Assembly (NCBI GenBank): GCA_964247055.1
Contig: OZ176050.1
Coordinates: forward strand, 3,162,001 to 3,226,000
DNA: 64,000 nt
From: Paragordius varius
Taxonomy: Eukaryota; Animalia; Nematomorpha
Direction: 5' to 3'
Shown one piece after another: positions 15,498 through 52,941 of the stretch. How positions within the stretch are numbered: position 1 is the first letter of the stretch; each line of letters starts with the position of its first letter. The position numbers were made by a program, and so were the translations under genes. The notes beneath the pieces are model-generated. The model did no database searches and had not been told where the DNA came from. It worked only from the letters and a program-made list of their open reading frames with translations.

Positions 15498-18400
15498 GGG
15501 TGTAAAAAATGATTGATTTTAAAAATAAAAATACATATCGGGATATGTACAAAGGTAAAACTGCATAATGCGGTAAATTAGTTTTCGTCAGATTTTTTGA
15601 TAAAATAAACTTTTTTAATTAAAGTGACAAACTCAATTTATATTATATGGTAAAACCAACCCGTAGCATTAAGATTTTGTTGATGATATTGATGTCCCTG
15701 TTTGCCCTTATTATATTGCTTATTTTTGTATAGATTGTTTGAATGATTAGTATTAGGATTATGGATAGTATTTTGAGCAAAAGATGTGGATGATGTTCCA
15801 AAATTTGTGTTTAATATATGATTTTGGTTAATCAGGCTAGTACCATTATTTGTGACAACCGCATAAGACTTAGTATTTGATTCGGAATTTAAAACGCTTT
15901 GATTTTCCAAATTATTTGTTAAGTTATTATTGGCTGTGTTATTGTTACGTCTATTAGCTCGGCGGCGAGACCTACGTCCTCCCCCACTTGTTACTAAAAA
16001 TGTATTTTTTCAATTCCATTTTAAAATACCAAATTACAAGAAATTGAAAAAACTCATTTATAACTTAAAAAATATAGTCCAAAGCCGCAAAACATATGAA
16101 AATGCATGTTATTTTTAAATATAATTCGCAGAGTTTAGTCAAAAATTTAAGCATATCTAAGCCTATATTTGACATATATTTAATACATATTAATATACCG
16201 CTTTATTTGCTTTGACTACAATTTAAATTTTGGGGATTAAACAAACTTTGTTTACGCAAACATATGCTCAAACAATTATTACTTACATAGTATAAAAATG
16301 ATATTTAAGGTTATTAGCAACAATAATAAATATTTTACCATTGGTTTGTTCAAGAGCATGATTTTGATCATGACTGTAATTAACATTGGTTGATTGACCA
16401 TTATTCACATTTTGATTATTTGTAGCACCATAATTATTATTATTACTACCACCTCTAATATGTCCGCGCCCATTTCTACCACCCCGACGACCTCTGATTG
16501 CAGAATTTTGTGTGTTTAATGTATTGCCAATATTAAACCATGTATTAGGAGCATGTGAGTTTCTATTTCTATTACGATTTCGATGACCACTCTGATTTGT
16601 ATTGCCTATGCTCCTTAGGGCTTGTAAAATTTCCATTTGCGTTGCACTATCTAACGAAGTATCATTATTATCGTTAGATGATTCATAATCCTCGCCAGCT
16701 GCTCGATAAAAATAGTGTTCTGGACAAAAATAATCATACATATAATTCTCAAGATCCAATTCATAATCACTGACAGTAATGTAGCCATTTTCCTCCTCTT
16801 CAAAGCTATCGCCATTACTATCCTCAAAAACATGGGGATTGGTTGAGTTTGTTAAAGGTTGACTATTGTTAGTTATTACACTGTTTATTACAGTGCTAAT
16901 TTGATTATTTGCATTTGTCACATTTCGATTGTTTCTTTGTCGCCTCCGTGCTCTCCGTGCCCGACGTCCCCCTACACGTGCATTACCATCCAGATTTGCT
17001 TCAGTATTATGAATATTTCCTTCTGAATTGACATTAACTGTATTAGTTTGTGATTGCGTAGTAGGAGGCCGATTCAAATCATCATTTTGATTAAAAAACT
17101 CAAAAATAGCTGCTGTCTCTTCAGCAATTTGCTCATCTGTCGGATAATTTTCAGACCAAGCTTGTAAATATTCTTCATTATTGCTGACATTTTGATTATT
17201 AACATTGGAATTTTCATTGGTAGTATTTTCTCCAGTTCTACTGATATTATTATTTGATCGAGTATTATTATGGGCATCTATCGTTACAGCGCGCAAGAAA
17301 TCGTCATAATCTATGCCAAATTCACTGTGGTCACTTTCACCATTGTCGTAATAATCAGTTAGGGAGATGTCATCATCTAAACCTGAAACAAATACATGAT
17401 TTATAAAATCAAAAATTGTATATTGTGAAATGCCGTATGAAAATGGGAAAAATGAATACATTTACCTTGATTATTAAGCTAAATAATATTTTTTACATAA
17501 AACAATCTTTAAAAGGCCCCTACCTAAACTAACAAAAAATACACAAATTACATATATATACCAAATATGCGTGAAGCAAAAAAATCCCAAAGTATGACAT
17601 CGTCCAGTTGGCGCCAAGGTTCCCGATTATTTCCATTTCGAGGGCGCCGACCCCTTCGAAGCAAGTTATCAGGATTTCGAGTTGCTAAAGTCCCGTCCGG
17701 GTAAGCATGTTTATAGAAACAAATGTCATGCATGGGACATTTCTCGGCACCTTGTTTGAAGTATTTACATGGTTTTTCACTATAGAGTTAATCAAATATT
17801 GAATATAAGGTCATAATTGTTATATACCATTTACAATTCAATTTCACCCTTAAACAATTCAAATTCACCCTCGAACAATTCAAATTCACCCTCGAACAAT
17901 TCAAACCCTTAAATAAAATATATGTTTTTTAAGATTAAAAATTACCTATATTTTATATATTTTTAAAAAATAAAAATTTTGTTTTAAATTAAAATATTAC
18001 TGAAAAAATTATAAACTATACCATAAACATATATTTCATATTAATAATGAGTTATATTAGTTCAAAAACACATAATTTATTTTTAGGGTCAATTTGAATT
18101 GTTCAAAGGTGAATTTGAATTGTTCAAGGGTGAATTTGAATTGTTGGAGGGTGAATTTGAATTGTTTTAGGGTGAATTTGAACTGTAAATGGTATATTAA
18201 ATAATACAGCAAAATCTAAAATTATTGAATCTTTACGTTAAAAGTAAAAGAGCGGAAATTTATAATTGTTAAATAACATATAAAAATTTAAAAAAACTAT
18301 GATGGTAAATTTTTTGATCCTTAATCTTTCCCATATTATATAATAATTAAAAATGTAAAATATAAATTTTAAGTGTGTAACTAATTTACACATCTATTCC

Positions 18401-21400
18401 TTGTTCCTTAAGCCAGATCGATAGGCTATAATTGAAAAATATCTTAATTTTATAATTTGTTTTGATTTGAAAAAAGTTAAATGATTCTAACGAATATTAA
18501 ATAAATTTATTATTATTTCTGATGATTGCATCATATTATTTTAAAATATGGTTACGTTATCATTAATAAAACTTTTGATATATTCTTATAATATTAATTT
18601 ATATTGTAATATAGATTAATAACATTAACATAATATATTGCAGTCCGTATAATATTATGTGAAGGTACATAACTTAACTAACATTCATTTTATTTTAACA
18701 ATTTTATTAATAATAAATAGGCAGAAAAATTGATTACCTCAAAGATTTCTTGTAATCTTCAATCAATTTATCTTTTTCCATTTTGTCTTCGACCCACACT
18801 TTACTTGGTATGATGAAAAGTGATTGTATTCGGCACTCAGGACAGGATCTAAGAATTAGGCGAGTGGTTGAAATCATAATTTAAATCCAAAATTATACAT
18901 GTCATACAAGGCATTCATGGTTAATTTTTGTGCAAAAAATTCGTATATGTAGTAATGAATGCCTCAGATATCCACAAATTTTTATTTAATGCAACTGTTT
19001 AAAATATAATATAAATTTTAAAAATATATATAATAACACATAAACTAGGATGGACATATTGTGTTGTTCGCATAAAAATAACAAAACAAAGTCAAATATA
19101 ATCAAAATTATATTTGGCAAATATATTTGTGAAATTTGCTATTAATGATGTTCATGTCTAAATTTACTTAACAAAATTATATCAAAGTTTAATGTTCGGC
19201 AAAAGATTGAATTAATTTTTAAGGAAATAAAATAGACAATCAGCCGTGAAGGCATTAAATTAATATTGTATAATTCATGCTATAATTAGCATGATTGTTA
19301 TATACTTATAAAAAATATATATAATGGAAATCCGAAAGCCAACACAGAAAAATATCAAAAATACCTGACAGTCTCGCTGTCCAACGATTGATTTTTGCTT
19401 TGGCGCCAATTCATGATGCAGGAAAGGCAATAACAATGTTGGCAGTTTGGGAGAATTCCAAATCGTTTATCTCTCGATGTTGAAGCAAATGTGGAACGTT
19501 TATTATGGCCTTTAATACATAGAGTAAAATTAAAATTCTTTAAAAGAAAGACTTATTATCAAATCATTTAGTACAAGATTTTCCCATATTTCATATGTTA
19601 ACAAAATTTATATAAATTCTTAATCGACATCACATTTTTTAATTTATTCATCTTCACTTAAAAATATATACCATTAAAGGACAGGAAAAAAACTAAAGTT
19701 CAATCCATTTAACTTTAAATTGGCCATTGTTTGTCAAATTTTATTTTCGGAATACATATGATACGTGATGCCTTGAATTATATAACAATATAGTGCAAAA
19801 GCAAGCCTATTTATATTTGTAACCATATCATTCTTAGAATTATAACATGTTTCAATATATATATGGTTAAAATGCATTGATGCCATGTCTTATTCACAGA
19901 ATGATTATTATATGATAAAAATAATTACTTATTTGAAACTGTTATCATTGTCGTCATTTTTATTTAAGATTGAGATAACTTAAGAAATTTATTTAAAATT
20001 GATTGATTCCTAAGATACACTCAAATTTATATTTATATAATTAAAATATATAGGTTTATAATAATTTTATCAAAATTATACATATTCTTCGTTTTTCAAA
20101 CCTTTATCATAATATGTAATGAATATTATGTATGCAATCCTAGTATACTCAGATTTAACCTTAATTTTCAAGAAAATCACTTAAATATGTAGGGAAAAAT
20201 ATGTATCATTAATGCTAAAAATTATTTAGGTGGACAGTTTTTTTTAGAGTATAAAAGACAAACTTTTTGTGGTTGATTTCAAAGATTCGCCAAGTGGATT
20301 GACATTTTCATCGAGGGGGTTGTCGGACTCGCCGTCTTCACCCAAAACTTTTTCATAACAAATCCCACAAGTTTTTTCTGCACTCCGTTGCACGGCAAAT
20401 GAAAACTCCATTTCCATTTGAATCTCTTTCATACAAGACTGTATTAAAAGGTAAAATATATTACTTATAATTGATGATTAAATTATAATTTCGGTTTTTA
20501 TTTGTGTTTAATCGTTTAAAACATGTGGATTTATTCTGTCAAAAACTAGAACATTGCTTTATACAGGCCTTGCGATGAGGAAAAGTTTACAAATGAGGGT
20601 TCAGAAATTTTTTTTTAGTAACAAAAATTAACTGAAAAAATGATGCCCTTAAACAAAGTTTAGCAAAACTAAGTTTCGCAAAAGTATATAAAACATAAAT
20701 GACCCTAATACAGTATAATACCCAACTTACCAACAGTAAAACACTCTATTTGTTATATTTTCGCTTAAATATAAAAACTAAATTCCGCAGAAACTTAAAT
20801 AAAACTTATATACCTAATTATATATCTATATTTTGTTTCGATAAAACTATCTAACCTCATATAATATAAACCAAACATAAAATGCCCAAACAAACCATAA
20901 GAGTCATTTACATTCTTATTACAAAAATGTGGTCGTAAAAGTAATGAACTAAAGAGACAAATCATGACTCAAAAGTTAAACTAAATAAAAACAAAAACAA
21001 CCTCTTTATGCATGGCATTATAACTTTCATTGTAGGGGTGTAGGACACGCTTAAGGCACACATCACAAGCCAAGGGGTGAATATAACCACATGTGCCTGA
21101 ACTTTCATAAGGACAAATCACAACACCAGTAGACATAAGTGGTTGATTCGAAGTAACAATATTATCAAACAGTTCGCTTTCATTTTCGTCATAAAGCGTG
21201 AAAAAAGGACACAGCGGTAAAGTTGATTTATCTTCGTTTGTTTCGATGAGTGGAGCGTTAGTTTTCAGAGCCGTGGCATAAGAAAGGCCGCCCATACCCA
21301 TCGCACCTGTTGTAGAAAATATATGTATCAAGATCTTTTGGGGAAAAAAACGTAAAAACACAGAATATATTGATATCATTATATTACATTATATTTAAAA

Positions 21401-22175
21401 ATATATTAATTATTAAAAGTGATTGTGGAGAAGTTTTTAAAATAATCGTTAGGCATTTAAAATTTATTTTGTTGTTTGATAAAGATTATTTAACAGTAAA
21501 GCCTTAAAATTATAGACAACGTATACTGAAAATACTTATTAACAGCTATAAATTCGGATTTTTTCGATAACCTCAATAATTTCAATTTCAAAATTTATAT
21601 TAGGGAGATACTCATATACATCTTTTCACCATATTTAATATCCCAAAACAATAAATAATGTAAAAAAGTGGTTAGGACTGTATGATTATATACAAATTTT
21701 GTCTTTTGGATTTAAGTCTTTTTAATTTAATCATTTACGGTAAATACATTTTATTTAGTATATATTTTATTAGCATCAAACCAGGATCGTATGATACTGG
21801 GGGAATAAACTCTTTTGCGTCTGCATTTAGCGGCCGCATTGAAACTTTGACATTTGGTATTTCGGCGCCCTTTTGGTTAGTTTTAACCAATTCTAGATCT
21901 AAATTTATTTTACAAATTTACCAATTCCATTATTTGCTAAATTAGGTTTTCCCTTTTTTGGGTTGACATGGTCGTATCTGATATTATAATGCATATTTTA
22001 CCGGCATTTTTTCTCATACGGACATTTTCCTTTTAGATAAAATCGACAAATCGAGGAAGGTTGATCATCGAGAGAATGAGAAAAACGACAATTAGATCCT
22101 TGATTACAATAACCATATAAATAATATCTAAATAAATATAAATATTTACCGGCATAAAATATTCTTAGTCGACAT
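14965..22175 (-). CDS. MKRN: Makorin (CCCH zinc finger / RING E3 ligase), 13 exons, ~980 aa, with long Asn-rich C-terminal extension
   Basis: Phase-consistent exons: 22175-22150, 22127-22002, 21977-21922, 21898-21782, 21306-21002, 20438-20264, 19509-19365, 18848-18738, 17779-17562, 17382-16339, 15993-15661, 15386-15164, 15028-14965. Motifs: two CCCH fingers (CRYYLYGYCNQGSNCRFSH; CRFYLKGKCPYEKKCRYDH), PAM2-like LNADAKEFIP, Cys-His motif CDVCLKRVLHP, RING (CGIC...FGILPNCQHCYCLSCIMNWR...SCPECR), final CCCH (CKYFKQGAEKCPMHDICFYKH). The last three exons are less certain. Confidence 0.9.
17823..18196. mobile_element. Foldback-type MITE with 21-bp tandem subterminal repeats, in makorin intron 8
   Basis: TATACCATTTACA...TGTAAATGGTATA termini; arrays of AACAATTCAAATTCACCCTCG-like units on the left and their reverse complements (GGGTGAATTTGAATTGTT) on the right. 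Confidence 0.8.
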
Positions 22176-22377
22176 AAACTTTTGTTTTGTGTCCAATAAT
22201 AAATATTTCTACCTAACTGCAAAAACTACAAATCTGTTTTTATATAATATTACAGGTGGCAAAAATTTTTTAAATGAAATAAATAGGCTGTTATTTAATT
22301 CCAGTTAACTTATTTCTAAGCGCGTTATAATAACCCTAGATAAGGAGGGTAGTTTATGTAAATTACATACTGATTAA

Positions 22378-22520: not shown

Positions 22521-24050
22521 GGTTTTTATAATAAATATTGGTTTTAAAACACATTCTCGAAAACGCAGGTTCCTATTCAGTTTCTATAAAAAATTTACAA
22601 TTGCGCCGAAACTGACTAAGCACTTTTTTAAAAAATGCGTACCCGGTCAGAAAACCGTCAAATTAAATAAAAGTTGTTTTGATTTATATATCTCGGGTTA
22701 CCTGAGATGAGAAATATTATAAAATGTATTATCGATCCTATCATTACGTTATTAGTCAATTTAAAACAATACAAAAATATTAAAAACTACGTACTGATAT
22801 ATAAAAAATGTATGAAACAGGTTATACCTACTGCTTATTCCAAACATCTTGACAAGGAAATATGCTAATGTAAGGCAGAACGATCGATAGCAAAGGGAAA
22901 ATAAATTAATTTGATCCAACATTCGCCCGTAATAGCTGTTTTATTAGGGATTTTTTCTATAATTTTTTAATAGTACAGTTTTTTTGAACAAGAGAACTGT
23001 GGGTTAAAACGCCGATATATGATTATTGCATGTGGAATACGATTTTAGTGATTGATCATAGGCCTAGAAGGAGAAATGCACAAAAAGTGAATGTAACAGT
23101 ATAAAAGCGCCATTAAGTTCTTTTTAAAGGGAATGGCTCACTGTAGTCATTAATAGATAGATTTTTCTATAATTCCAAGATTGGATTTATTTAAAGATTA
23201 TAATTGAAATTATTTGGTCGATTTCGTTTACACATCCTTATAGTTATCCAAATAATTTAGTTTTGACTTCCAACATTTTCTTCCATCATCGTGTATGCAT
23301 ACCTTTATCTGCTAACATTCCTAACATAAACTATAACGTCCCTAATGACATAAGCCCAAATTTTTACAAAAATTTTATCCACAATATAATTTGCAAAACG
23401 CTAATGCTATTAATATAACCACCCGAACTCACCAAACGCGAATACCGCCCTGAAAAAGAAATAAATACGTCCCAATGTCGTTAAATACCTCCGAAATTTG
23501 AGATGCAACAAAAATTTGATTATCTGTTCATTAAGACACTGCTAAGTATGTGGCTATATAATTTTATATGTAAAATTACCAAAGTTTTTATCCATATAAG
23601 ATATTATATTAAGTACATGAGATATATTTTTGTTATATTTAAATTGTACAGAAAATTATGTAAATGTGTTTAACACTAAATTTTTATTTTATTTTCTTAA
23701 ATTATATGGTGTATTAATGAAATTTGATAAATCTTACTGCCATTTTCTAGAGTATTTTGCTTTTAAACTAATTTTATTAATTTAAATAATTTTTTTATTC
23801 CAATAATCTCCATTCATGACTGTGATCCCTTTCAAAAACTGTCTTTTATCATATTGTATATTCATCTGTAATTATCAACTCTCGTATTATGGATTAGGCT
23901 GAATCAGTATGTTTTAGAATGATATAATGTAACAGCAAATTAATAATAAATTTATTAATGAATTTTCATTAGATTCATCTAACTTATTCGGATTAACATA
24001 AAATAAAAATAAAATTAAAATAATGATACAAAATTAAATTATAAAATATT

Positions 24051-24401: not shown

Positions 24402-24480
24402 TCTTCATAAATACATACACATCTTTATTTTTATAAAATATTTTATAATTTAATTTTGTATCATTAAATTTTATTTTTAT

Positions 24481-24533
24481 TTTATGTTAATCCGAAGAAG
24501 TTAGATGAATCTAACGAAAATTCATTAATAAAT
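24481..24533 (+). ncRNA. Minimal type I hammerhead ribozyme motif in the Penelope pseudo-LTR
   Basis: UUAAU-CCGAAGAA-GUUAG(AUGAAU)CUAAC-GAAA-A-UUC-AUUAA: stem I, core (U4C variant), 5-bp stem II, palindromic AAUU minimal stem III, UUC triplet. A second, more mutated copy is on the - strand at ~23950-24001. Confidence 0.7.
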
Positions 24534-24543
24534 TTATTATTAA

Positions 24544-28932: not shown

Positions 28933-31900
28933 ATGAAGCTTGAATGGGCCTTTTTGTATATAATATTCGCCCTGTTTTTGGCGAAAAGCTTTGGCGCTTA
29001 TGTGGTAAATATTTTAATTTAAAATATAAGCCTATGCCAACTATTGTTCCTGCCCCAGATGCTGACCCACAAAAAGATGCTATGCTATTGAGGAAAGCTT
29101 TAGCTGGATTCGGTATGTAAACCTATTCACTATATTTAAAAAATAATTATTATTATTATTATTAAATATTGCTAAACTTTTAAAATTGGGGGTATTATTT
29201 TTTAAATATCTACTTCTGAATGGTATGAGTTGGCAAAAGTCTTACTACATCAGTATTATATATCATATCACACTTGGTTGAATCTCTATATCAGCACTGA
29301 AATCCGGTCAAAAAATAATTTTTTTGTATTAATCCGCATGACTAGTCGTCTCTCTAAGAAACTACAAGTCTGTGAAATACATTTGTTGAATTCTTTGTAA
29401 TGTTTCTTCCGTATCCATTATGTATCAAGGCTCGTTTAAATGGATTACATATTCAAAATCTCCCAAAATCACAAATTATAAACTCACATGTCTCCGGCTT
29501 AAAAATTTGTTTCAATGCTAAAATCATGGATTTTGACACCATTATATGTTTTATTTTCTAAAATAGCACGACAACTTACAAATCAAGTAGGTATCCTATG
29601 AATGTTTCAAAGTGTTCTTAGATCTATCCATAAAATTTGGTTAAACAATTTTTTAAATTAAATTATGTTATAATTCATCTACAATTATAAAAATAGCCTT
29701 AATAATACGCATATCAAATTTTATTTATAATTCGAATATAAAATTTATTTATTTGCTTTTATGAATAAATAGACTAGTTTCGGAACTCCAAATGGTGTTC
29801 CGTTGAGAAATTTTAAAACATAATTAAAAATTGAGTCTAGGTGTTTCACTTGTAAAATCTAATTAAAACGTGCTTTTCCAATTGGGCTAATTGTACCCAT
29901 CCTCTTGATGAAAGTAAGCGGAGTGCCGCTTCATAATAATTACACATTCTCGAAATGCATTAGTTTATTAAAATTGTTATGGGATGTTATTACCGAAATT
30001 TATGTAATAATACAAATAAGTGACTTGTGCTGACTTTTATCATTTATTTTTAAAATTATTAATATTAAAGCAATATATTAGTATTTTTGCACCTTCATCG
30101 CTTTGAATTTTTTATAAAAAAGGCTGCTTGCGAAGATTAAAGTTTGACCACTATAGTGACTCAAGAAAATATCAAACAATAAGATTTATCATGTTACATC
30201 ACAAAAATTAACTATATAAAATTTGCGATGTTTAAATATTATTTGTGCTGTTTAAACCAAGGTAAAATAACGTGTTCATGCTCAATACAAAAGTGATACA
30301 ATAGTTTAATTCAAATACTAGATTTGTCTATAAAAGATAACAATAGTTTAATTCAAATACTAGATTTGTCTATAAAAGATAATCTACATATTTCCTTATC
30401 CGAAGTTTTCTGGTTCTTTCTCTATTGTCTTTTCAGCCATTTCGACCTTGGAAAGTTTATCGTTCTCCTTTCCTTTGTTATGTTACCCCCTCTTCCCGAT
30501 TATTGGTTGCAATATTAAACTCATCAGTTTGGTTTATCGTTGGACCAAAATCATACCCCGCTTCATTCTTCGCGACGCCGGCGTGATTAATCCTCATGTT
30601 TTCAAAGCGTTTGTATGCCATCTTTTACCGGCGAGAGCCCCTGTTCTCTCCAAAATTGAACCTTTTCTATACCCCGTATTGATTTCATTCTTTATGTACA
30701 CCTCTTCGTCCGGTGTGAAAATTTAATTAAGTATGATGTCTTCATCTAATTGTTGCAAGGGTGTTTTTTAACCCAGGATAAAGGGGTAGCGAAAGATTCC
30801 CAGCTCGAGATAGAAAGGGAAATGACAATAGAAAAAGAAACAGAAAGAAGATATTTGCTCGGGGGAAAAGCACTGGATCGGCTTGATTCAGATAAGGGGA
30901 TATGATAGATTTGAACACATCATTTAAAACTTGGTATGGACAAATTTAAATGTCAGATTTAAATATATTTATAACTGATAATTTGTTGAAATATCGTGGG
31001 CAGAAGAAGTTATTAATGGAAGTCTCCTAAATTGGAAAAGATTCGTATGCGAAGTAGACGTGAGTAAATTTGATAATCATGGTGGATGGAGATTTGCTAG
31101 TAGGCCTCTTTAAGATTCAGGGTAGTAAAATTTTCTCTGCCCAACTGATCAAAGTTGGACAATGATCGACTGAAACCAAACATGGGTTAAATGTAACTCA
31201 AAAATCCCCACATATGCGATCATTTTTTCTTAACTATCACCAACGGAGTTACCCAGTCGATTCGCGTTTTCGAGGAGGTAATGGCTTCAATGATACCCAG
31301 ACTCTCGAGCCTTTTTAATTCAGCGATGGGCACCCTACGTGCAAATGTTTTTGGGATGCTACCCTTTTTCAAAACAACTTGATGGGTGGTCCTGTATAAC
31401 ACCCAATACCCTCACCAAACAAATATTTTAATATCTTCATCCACACAATAAACTTTTCACATAGACTATCCGGGAATCTACATTAGAAACTTTTTTTTTC
31501 CATAGTAACCCAATGTTACCCCAATCCTCATTTTAACAACACACTATAGCTGATTGGCCATTTGTTACTTTCACATCTACCACGCTTTTCCCCATCATTT
31601 CCACGCCTTGAGGATTGATCCCCACTATTGGACCCGCAGGTGTTAAAGTCGGCCTCCCAATCTCCTGCCAGGTGCTTTTCCCTCATATTTGAGCTCCGGT
31701 ATCATACACCATCCTCACCCAATGGCCATTCAGAATTGCTTGCGTGTGGGCCTCATTATTATTATTGTTACCATTCGCTATATTAAATCGCCGGCAACAC
31801 CTGCCAAAGGACCTCGTCCTTTGCATCGGTATTTCTTGAAGCGGACCAGTTGATCGCATGGACATACCCGCATTTTCCGCACTTCTTTTTTATCATCATC

Positions 31901-51200: not shown

Positions 51201-52941
51201 AAACAAAAAAATTGATTTTTTTAATATATAAAATTATTATAATTTATAGTATTTTACGCTCAATGCCGAATTTATAATATCGGCATCATATTCAGCTGCC
51301 GGGGTCATAAGGGTAGTCAAAAATTGCTTGACTTTGCGATTCGTGTCTCCTTGCAGATCTTTCACTAAGTTCTAAAAAATAATATAATAAAACGTAACAT
51401 TTTGCATGGTTTAATTACATTTATTATATAGATTTGATAAATTCATTTTAGTAAATTGAGTTTTCTATATTTTTTATCCATTATGATTATGAATGTTTGT
51501 TATGCGATATATGAAAGAAACCCTATTGTAATCAACAAAATCGGTACAAGTAAGCCATATTATTGTTCGAACCCTTTTTAAGGATTTTTTTTATCATATA
51601 TTCATTTTTAACAAAACATTTGTCCTAATGATCTTTAATTGCCAAAATTTACACATTTTTGTTTTAATGGATAGGAGTGTAACCTTAATATTCGCGCACT
51701 AGTGGGAAATATGGGATGCAACAGTTGTTCAAACAGTTGCAATTAAACGTAAATGCACGTGAAACGTAATTTCCAATTTTCGACTTAATAAATTAACTTG
51801 GGTTAAAATAATATTGAGGTGACAATTATTTATTAAGCATATAAAAAGGCTAGTGTATATATTTATGGTATCGGTTAAGTAAATAAAAAAAATATATTGA
51901 TGTTTTTTATGGCTGCTATTATGCGATTAAAAAAAGTTGTTTGACACAAGCAGGATATTGGTCGAAATTATGTTTTTTTAAATAAATACCAAAAATAAAC
52001 ACAAAATAAATTGTAAAAACTTCAAAATATAAAATATGAAAACCCGGTTAAATAGCTTTTGATAGGCTTCTTTTATTTGTTGTCGTTGGTAATTGTTGCG
52101 CCCACCAATGATCTGAAAAACAGTCTTAACATCTGTCCCTTTACAAATTAGCGATTAAAGATAAAAATGTCAATATTAAAACCATATTAATACCATAAAA
52201 TAGTAAATACATATTTTATTAAATTCTAGTGTGATTAAAATACTATGCCTAAGTTGCACCATTTGGTACATAACTTACCTTATTTTTATCAGGGTTTCGA
52301 ACCGGAAATCGGTTCGTGAGAATTCAGCAGGAACCGACCGCATCCATCGGTTGAAACCAACCAGATTTCATTTTTACATTTTTAGGAACCAGTTCGGTTT
52401 CAACCGTCTTGGTACTGCCCCGGTTCCGGTCTACTTTTTAAACCGGTTTGAAGCCCTTATTTTTATTAATTTGGGTTCACAAATATTGTAAATCATATTT
52501 TATATCAGCGTGGTCCAACACAAATATCTTCGGGTAAAATTTTGTTTTTTTCAATTTATTTTGAGCCCAATTTTGGATGATAGACCTTAACAAATTAAAA
52601 AATTTTGATTAGATTCTATAATTTTTTTAACATTTTTTAGCTTTGCATGAGCAACCAAAGACAGCAGAAATTTCAATTTTCTATAAAATATAATTTACAA
52701 CTCAAAATGTTTTTTGGTTTGCAAAATTCTATGTAAAAATCAATTACCCACGCCCTTTAAAGCTTTTCTTAGGCCTTCGGCATCTTGGTTAGCATTGAAA
52801 TTTGGATATGGAACTATAGTAGGCTATCTATATATATTTATCTTATACGTTTTTGTCATATGGGGGTGGTGACTGCAGAATATATTTTCTAACGAGTAGG
52901 GAGAATGTAATGATTATCAAATATTTTGCAAATATCGTCAT
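48296..52941 (-). CDS. Annexin (paralog 2), 11 exons, 354 aa, with hydrophobic N-terminal leader
   Basis: Exons 52941-52849, 52823-52748, 52138-52044, 51371-51258, 51104-51008, 50927-50848, 50813-50757, 50169-49977, 49907-49849, 48606-48484, 48373-48296. Five internal exons have the same sizes as in paralog 1 (95, 114, 80, 57, 193 nt). Motifs [62 protein letters not shown]. Confidence 0.92.
49500..49720. repeat. Foldback-like minisatellite in annexin 2 intron 9
   Basis: AAACGCAACA(C/T)TT units on the left and AAATGTTGCGTTTGG units on the right, in inverted orientation. Confidence 0.6.
50305..50570. mobile_element. hAT-type MITE in annexin 2 intron 7
   Basis: CAGGGGTATCCAA...TGGACACCTCGG termini, GCGGCC(C) subterminal motifs, flanks GTTTATAT / GTTTATAC (7/8 TSD). 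Confidence 0.8.
52290..52458. mobile_element. GAACCGG-rich MITE with 8-bp TSD (hAT-like) in annexin 2 intron 2
   Basis: CAGGGTTTCGAACCGG...CCGGTTTGAAGCCCTT flanked by ATTTTTAT on both sides. Confidence 0.75.

Follow-up and report, generated by a model that had tools for sequence, protein, structure and literature searches.

In the 64-kb window analysed here (64,000 nt of the Paragordius varius contig OZ176050.1, positions 3,162,001 to 3,226,000), the 5' region of a makorin gene on the minus strand is interrupted by three segments of 22, 24, and 23 nt. These are very probably genuine U2-type GT-AG introns of a functional makorin, old introns that would have shrunk to 22-24 nt. On the comparisons given below, we hold introns 1 and 2 to be real with high confidence and intron 3 to be probable, and we infer that all three segments are removed from the RNA.

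Sequence and reading frame of the putative introns

Intron 1 (22128 to 22149, minus strand, 22 nt, GTAAAT...TTTAG, phase 2, GC 9%), intron 2 (21978 to 22001, minus strand, 24 nt, GTAAAA...ATCAG, phase 2, GC 21%), and intron 3 (21899 to 21921, minus strand, 23 nt, GTAAAT...TTTAG, phase 1, GC 13%) all start with GTAAA, end with YAG (TAG or CAG), and thus have the GT-AG ends of U2-type introns. They are the three GT..AG segments proposed in a sequence-only reading of the window, recovered on the minus strand with the same sequences and coordinates. U12-type features are absent: the donors are GTAAAT or GTAAAA as opposed to (A/G)TATCCTT, and the TCCTTAAC branch motif was not found. The makorin exons have a GC content of 32-44%, the long introns 20-25%, and the tiny introns 9-21%.

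Starting at the ATG at 22175 and with intron 1 retained, the frame meets a stop right behind MSTKNILCR (nine residues). When intron 1 is taken out and intron 2 retained, a TAA inside intron 2 follows ...KKCR; when introns 1 and 2 are out and intron 3 is retained, the product ends in ...NNGIGKFVK-stop, eight codons past the intron 3 donor. With the 69 nt of all three segments removed, 108 residues can be read in a single open frame, MSTKNILCR|YYLYGYC...KKCR|YDHVNP...NNGI|DLELV...LNADAKEFIPPVSYDP, with two CCCH fingers and the PAM2-like motif LNADAKEFIP. The claims made earlier about this frame held up in the translations: removal of the first segment joins MSTKNILCR to YYLYGYC and gives finger 1 the spacing C-x7-C-x5-C-x3-H, the second segment places its TAA ahead of the finger 2 His when retained and yields CRYDH when removed, and removal of the third keeps the frame into LNADAKEFIP.

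A second acceptor of intron 3, ATCTAG|, lies 6 nt downstream and would extend the intron to 21893 (29 nt); it likewise keeps the frame into the PAM2-like motif. Acceptor choice usually follows the first-AG rule, by which the 23-nt form would be more likely than the 29-nt form. An internal donor in intron 3, with which 15 or 21 nt would be removed, was considered and dropped, as it breaks the frame before the PAM2 motif.

Makorin homology across the junctions

Exon 2 alone matches Pfam zf-CCCH (E 1.3e-8). Searched against 1.8 billion protein representatives, it matched a protein of 672 aa with 61% identity over all 41 residues; this ortholog comes from the horsehair worm Gordionus sp. m RMFG-2023 and is named makorin-1-like by its source. 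The Gordionus makorin starts with MSTKKIQCRYFLYGYC... and later reads ...KRCRYDHVKP, so that across junctions 1 and 2 it agrees with the spliced product of the window. In a tblastn comparison of the Gordionus protein with the raw window, intron 2 appears as an 8-codon insertion containing a stop. The spliced N-terminus aligns ungapped at LCR|Y and CR|YDH with 14 makorins (Gordionus and 13 more, from sponge to sharks). Residues flanking junction 3 are poorly conserved, and the frame still runs into the PAM2 motif.

Most of the other matches to exon 2 (41 aa) among the protein representatives were multi-CCCH repeat proteins, with few makorins, and the search of solved structures returned generic CCCH proteins only (e.g., CPSF4 and MBNL1). 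The 74-aa raw ORF around exon 2, used as a query for other hairworm assemblies, found nothing, and an exact-sequence look-up of P0060 and of the Acropora protein P0159 yielded no gene on record with exactly that product.

The order of domains in the makorin family (two CCCH fingers, PAM2, CCCH, C3HC4 RING, CCCH) is found throughout the four-species alignment described below, and the top homologs are named makorin. Like the makorin (MKRN1/2) E3 ubiquitin ligases, the window protein has two N-terminal CCCH fingers, PAM2, a third CCCH finger followed by CDVC...LHP, a C3HC4 RING, and a last CCCH finger. It differs from them in its degenerate third finger and its long, Asn-rich tail (as in Gordionus).

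Intron positions in four species

We rebuilt the Gordionus gene model from its DNA, which reproduced the annotated protein exactly, and likewise rebuilt models for a chiton (Liolophura) and a millipede (Chamberlinius); all were aligned with the window. Exons 1 and 2 of Gordionus measure 26 and 126 nt, lengths identical to those in the window, and its first two introns interrupt the Arg codons that are interrupted in the window, likewise in phase 2. In the alignment, introns 1 and 2 fall at columns 20 and 63, in phase 2, in all four species. Conservation of the CR|Y position in other makorins had been suggested as a check, and column and phase are indeed the same in Gordionus, the millipede, and the chiton. 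Four later intron positions are also common to the species compared.

The lengths of these introns differ widely. Intron 1 has 22 nt in the window, 221 nt in Gordionus, 312 nt in the millipede, and 4892 nt in the chiton, and intron 2 has 24, 43, 57, and 297 nt, respectively. Because positions and phases are common to the four species, introns 1 and 2 are best read as old introns that would have shrunk in the hairworm-like lineage. The short introns of Gordionus (43 nt) and the millipede (57 nt) are similar to those of the window in gene, position, and phase, but the latter are ~20-35 nt shorter and fall under the ~30 nt usually assumed as the intron floor for animals.

Intron 3 lies within 2 alignment columns of a phase-1 intron of the millipede (57 nt), which is followed by the 102-nt PAM2 exon of that species. 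Its site is in a fast-evolving linker between finger 2 and PAM2 that is unalignable with Gordionus, where the linker has ~150 extra residues and two phase-1 introns; the chiton is intronless there. The PAM2 exon measures 117 nt in the window, 111 nt in Gordionus (LNVNAKEFYP), and 102 nt in the millipede, and in the window and Gordionus it has phase 1 on both sides.

These positions bear on the possibility that the gene is a decaying pseudogene in which the segments are small insertions that resemble introns by chance. Retention of the segments breaks the frame and the third zinc finger is degenerate, as might be expected of such a gene. Two of the three segments, however, lie exactly at intron positions and phases common to three other species, all three start with GTAAA and end with YAG (for a segment with fixed ends, a chance of ~4.5e-5 each), and open frames with conserved motifs make up the remaining seven exons. 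We therefore regard decay as very improbable and a functional makorin with genuine introns as the better account.

Chance controls in the window

On both strands of the 64-kb window, we looked for open frames joined by GT..AG segments of 16-60 nt and, as controls, by segments bounded by five other dinucleotide pairs. In this ORF-joining scan, GT..AG segments were no commoner than the controls and had no peak at 22-26 nt, and a histogram of GTAAA-to-YAG spacing over the same 64 kb was flat. Frame restoration alone is no evidence in this AT-rich window. Because neither scan shows an excess over controls, the case for introns rests on homology.

Independent DNA and RNA reads

The segments were also found in independent reads. 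In run X1, which carries the same species label (~190-fold depth per haplotype), a single 188-nt contig covers 21772-21959 (exon 4, intron 3, and part of exon 3) and runs ungapped through intron 3. In run X3, which is labelled as another organism and has a depth of ~6, a 228-nt contig is identical to 21986-22213 and includes intron 1 and 16 of the 24 nt of intron 2. Contigs omitting any of the three segments were absent from the X1 and X3 DNA runs.

The X3 contig must be DNA of the same species, and the use of X3 as a related species for comparison was dropped, the contig being identical to the window. Parts of the makorin locus are contained in runs X3, X5, X7, and X8, labelled as four other organisms, and this looks like carry-over of the species' DNA between samples, not like relatives.

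The X1 contig differs from the window at one place, 21919, where it has A for T on the plus strand; the intron 3 donor GTAAAT thereby becomes GTTAAT (+3). Polymorphism or a consensus difference accounts for it; donors with U at +3 are rare.

Assembly or consensus artefacts, which had been named as a possible refutation, could be suspected from this base difference at 21919 and from a hole in X1 at 21971-22072, although holes are no evidence of absence. Against this stand the ungapped matches of the X1 contig (21772-21959) and the X3 contig (21986-22213) to the window and the lack of any contig that omits a segment. An assembly artefact is highly unlikely because the independent short-read contigs, from DNA of the same species, contain introns 1 and 3 and part of intron 2.

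The same contigs bear on programmed elimination of the segments at the DNA level, in the manner of the internal eliminated sequences (IES) of ciliates. The shortest ciliate IES have a similar size range, and their boundaries are of TA type. Here the segments are bounded by GT/AG instead of TA and lie where other animals have ordinary spliceosomal introns; in the DNA contigs they are present at full depth, and a deleted form was not seen. Such elimination is highly improbable.

Two RNA runs of the species (X9 and X11) gave no contig on 20900-22400 and next to none of the words of the gene.

In intron 4 (21535-21801), 20 substitutions and 3 indels separate the two X1 haplotypes over 267 nt (~7.5%). 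Non-coding heterozygosity is very high.

Proposed splicing of tiny and ordinary introns in one transcript

The donors of the three tiny introns (G|GTAAAT, G|GTAAAA, and G|GTAAAT) are more uniform than those of the long makorin introns (GTTTGA, GTTGTT, GTATTT, GTAATC, and GTATAT), whose acceptors are CAACAG, ATACAG, TCTTAG, CTATAG, and TTTCAG. All three tiny introns have, as judged by eye, an A ~5-7 nt upstream of the 3' YAG that could be the branch point, and none has room for a pyrimidine tract. Uniform donors, an A near the 3' end, and the lack of a pyrimidine tract are consistent with an intron recognised as a whole, its branch point lying very near the 3' site. The tiny introns would thus probably be recognised as whole units across the intron, and the transcript would lose six ordinary introns of 179-958 nt as well. 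Many genomes have both a short and a long intron class, so the oddity would lie in how short the short class is. The "unusually flexible spliceosome" suggested in the sequence-only reading is at most an inference, and none of these features points to an altered spliceosome.

The acceptors of the Gordionus makorin are A-rich and not pyrimidine-rich: of the eight, five have AAAG (AAAAG or TAAAG) and a further two CAAG at their ends. Hairworm 3' splice sites in general may lack the normal pyrimidine tract, judging by these sequences.

The introns may also be real but removed inefficiently or conditionally, in which case retention would act as an on/off control of makorin output. Any retention truncates makorin at once, the GTT variant at +3 may weaken the intron 3 donor, and PMC13644364 cites a median of ~25% for the efficiency with which very short introns of microsporidia are spliced. 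Outside these segments, however, the gene is intact and conserved, and it must therefore be spliced productively. We consider such control unlikely, if less so than the other alternatives, and prefer genuine introns of a functional gene.

Comparison with known tiny introns

Animal introns below ~30 nt have long been taken as annotation errors. In 51 animal genomes, introns of <30 nt were found only in Myxobolidae and Dicyema japonicum, according to PMC13644364 (Mol Biol Evol, September 2026), whose text names no nematomorph; this agrees with the rarity of such introns claimed in the sequence-only reading. At 22, 24, and 23 nt, the makorin introns fall within the size range (<30 nt) of the Dicyemida/Myxobolidae-type ultra-short introns. 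As described in that study, the introns of Dicyema japonicum and the myxobolids (Henneguya, Thelohanellus, and Myxobolus) are similar to those of the window in having GT-AG ends and ~20-27 nt in a parasitic animal, conserved positions between conserved exons, no room for a pyrimidine tract, and an A few bases before the AG. Whole-unit recognition with a branch point near the 3' site is suggested there for the dicyemid and myxobolid introns.

There are also differences. Dicyemids and myxobolids have a median intron of 22-27 nt and compact genomes with almost exclusively tiny introns, whereas in the makorin gene of the window three of nine introns are tiny and the rest have 179-958 nt, some with repeats, so that a median of <30 nt, as in compact genomes of the Dicyemida/Myxobolidae type, does not apply within this gene. 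The 5' site is a fuller GTAAA in the window as against only 'GTa' in dicyemids and myxobolids (PMC13644364).

Outside animals, the tiny makorin introns resemble those of ciliates and nucleomorphs in size class, AT-richness, and canonical GT-AG ends. Introns have ~25 nt in Paramecium and 15-16 nt in Stentor, and nucleomorph introns are tiny. Unlike the window species, these are unicellular, are not animals, and have nearly all of their introns tiny.

Neither the Gordionus genome preprint nor a comparative preprint on four hairworm genomes mentions introns, and the full-text literature on hairworms combined with introns or with ultra-short, micro-, or tiny introns held no report for Nematomorpha. 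Within the literature searched, tiny introns in Nematomorpha are unreported.

If splicing removes all three, a nematomorph would join dicyemids and myxobolids as a third animal lineage of this kind, with 22-nt and ~1-kb introns in one transcript. We lean, with moderate confidence, to the wider proposal that the lineage may have a discrete class of introns of 22-28 nt, concentrated toward the 5' ends of its genes, derived from ancestral introns of ~40-60 nt and standing beside kilobase repeat-bearing introns in a non-compact genome. Sub-30-nt introns would then have arisen independently in animals for a third time, and for the first time a single spliceosome would process both extremes within single transcripts. 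If true, the lineage would be a natural system in which to ask how small animal introns can be.

The minimum intron length set in gene finders and RNA mappers is usually 20-30 nt or more. Such standard minima could truncate or split genes of this kind, the first coding exon of makorin having only 26 nt, and truncated or split genes could lower the apparent gene completeness of such genomes.

Candidate micro-introns were also seen in two annexin genes of the window. In one gene, the candidate lies at 29005-29030 (plus strand, 26 nt, GTAAAT...ATAAG), and in the other at 52824-52848 (minus strand, 25 nt, GTATAA...GATAG). Each candidate comes immediately after a first coding exon that is short and hydrophobic, and in both genes it precedes the first annexin repeat at the same place. 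All five candidates of the window (three in makorin and two in the annexins) are among the first three introns of their genes, a pattern that the way of finding them may bias.

Structure of the whole makorin gene

Guided by the Gordionus protein, we modelled the makorin gene as 10 exons from 22175 to 16283 on the minus strand, encoding 770 aa with all makorin motifs and no internal stop. Exon 1 (coding part 22150 to 22175, 26 nt) starts at the ATG at 22175 and encodes MSTKNILC plus 2 nt of an Arg codon; exon 2 (22002 to 22127, 126 nt) encodes the remainder of CCCH finger 1 and the greater part of finger 2; exon 3 (21922 to 21977, 56 nt) encodes YDHVNPKKGKPNLANNGI; and exon 4 (21782 to 21898, 117 nt) contains the PAM2-like LNADAKEFIP. 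Intron 4 (21307 to 21781, 475 nt, GTTTGA...CAACAG, phase 1) includes, to judge by its depth spikes and loose ends, a repeated stretch at ~21360-21510, and is followed by exon 5 (21002 to 21306), which holds the degenerate third CCCH finger and the CDVC...LHP motif.

In this third finger (~21075-21215), ~7 residues including one Cys are missing compared with Gordionus, the millipede, and the chiton, leaving C-x7-C-x3-H, and the region has ~17 extra residues upstream compared with the same species. A hidden in-frame micro-intron behind the odd finger was considered and dropped, none being visible in the DNA.

Intron 5 (20439 to 21001, 563 nt, phase 0) is at a position common to all four species. 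Exon 6 (20291 to 20438) contains the start of the RING (CGICYEKV) and has an uncertain 3' end: homology scoring favours a GC donor, and with a GT donor the end would be at 20329 or 20260. Intron 6 (19471 to 20290, ~820 nt), with a tentative junction, leads to exon 7 (19365 to 19470), the middle of the RING (DKRFGILPNCQHCYC...). Intron 7 (18849 to 19364, 516 nt, phase 2) is again at a position common to the four species, as is the length of exon 8 (18738 to 18848, 111 nt, RSCPECRIQS...). Intron 8 (17780 to 18737, 958 nt, phase 2) contains repeats. Exon 9 (17562 to 17779) encodes the last CCCH finger (CKYF...CFYKHAYPDG), intron 9 (17383 to 17561, 179 nt, GTATAT...TTTCAG, phase 1) was placed by the frame, and exon 10 (16283 to 17382) encodes the Asn-rich C-terminal tail to the stop; all on the minus strand. 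Introns 6 (~820 nt) and 9 (179 nt) are present in the window and absent from Gordionus, the millipede, and the chiton, and are possible intron gains, with junctions drawn from frame and homology.

The intron lengths are, in order, 22, 24, 23, 475, 563, 820, 516, 958, and 179 nt. The earlier description of "~1-kb TE-containing introns" in this gene is roughly right for the repeat-bearing introns 4 and 8, but the six long introns range from 179 to 958 nt and are not uniformly ~1 kb. Within intron 8, a stretch at ~18440-18549 is 74-77% identical to 23909-24022 and 24468-24542, upstream of the gene, and two 21-nt tandem arrays lie in opposite orientation at 17833-17905 and 18085-18186.
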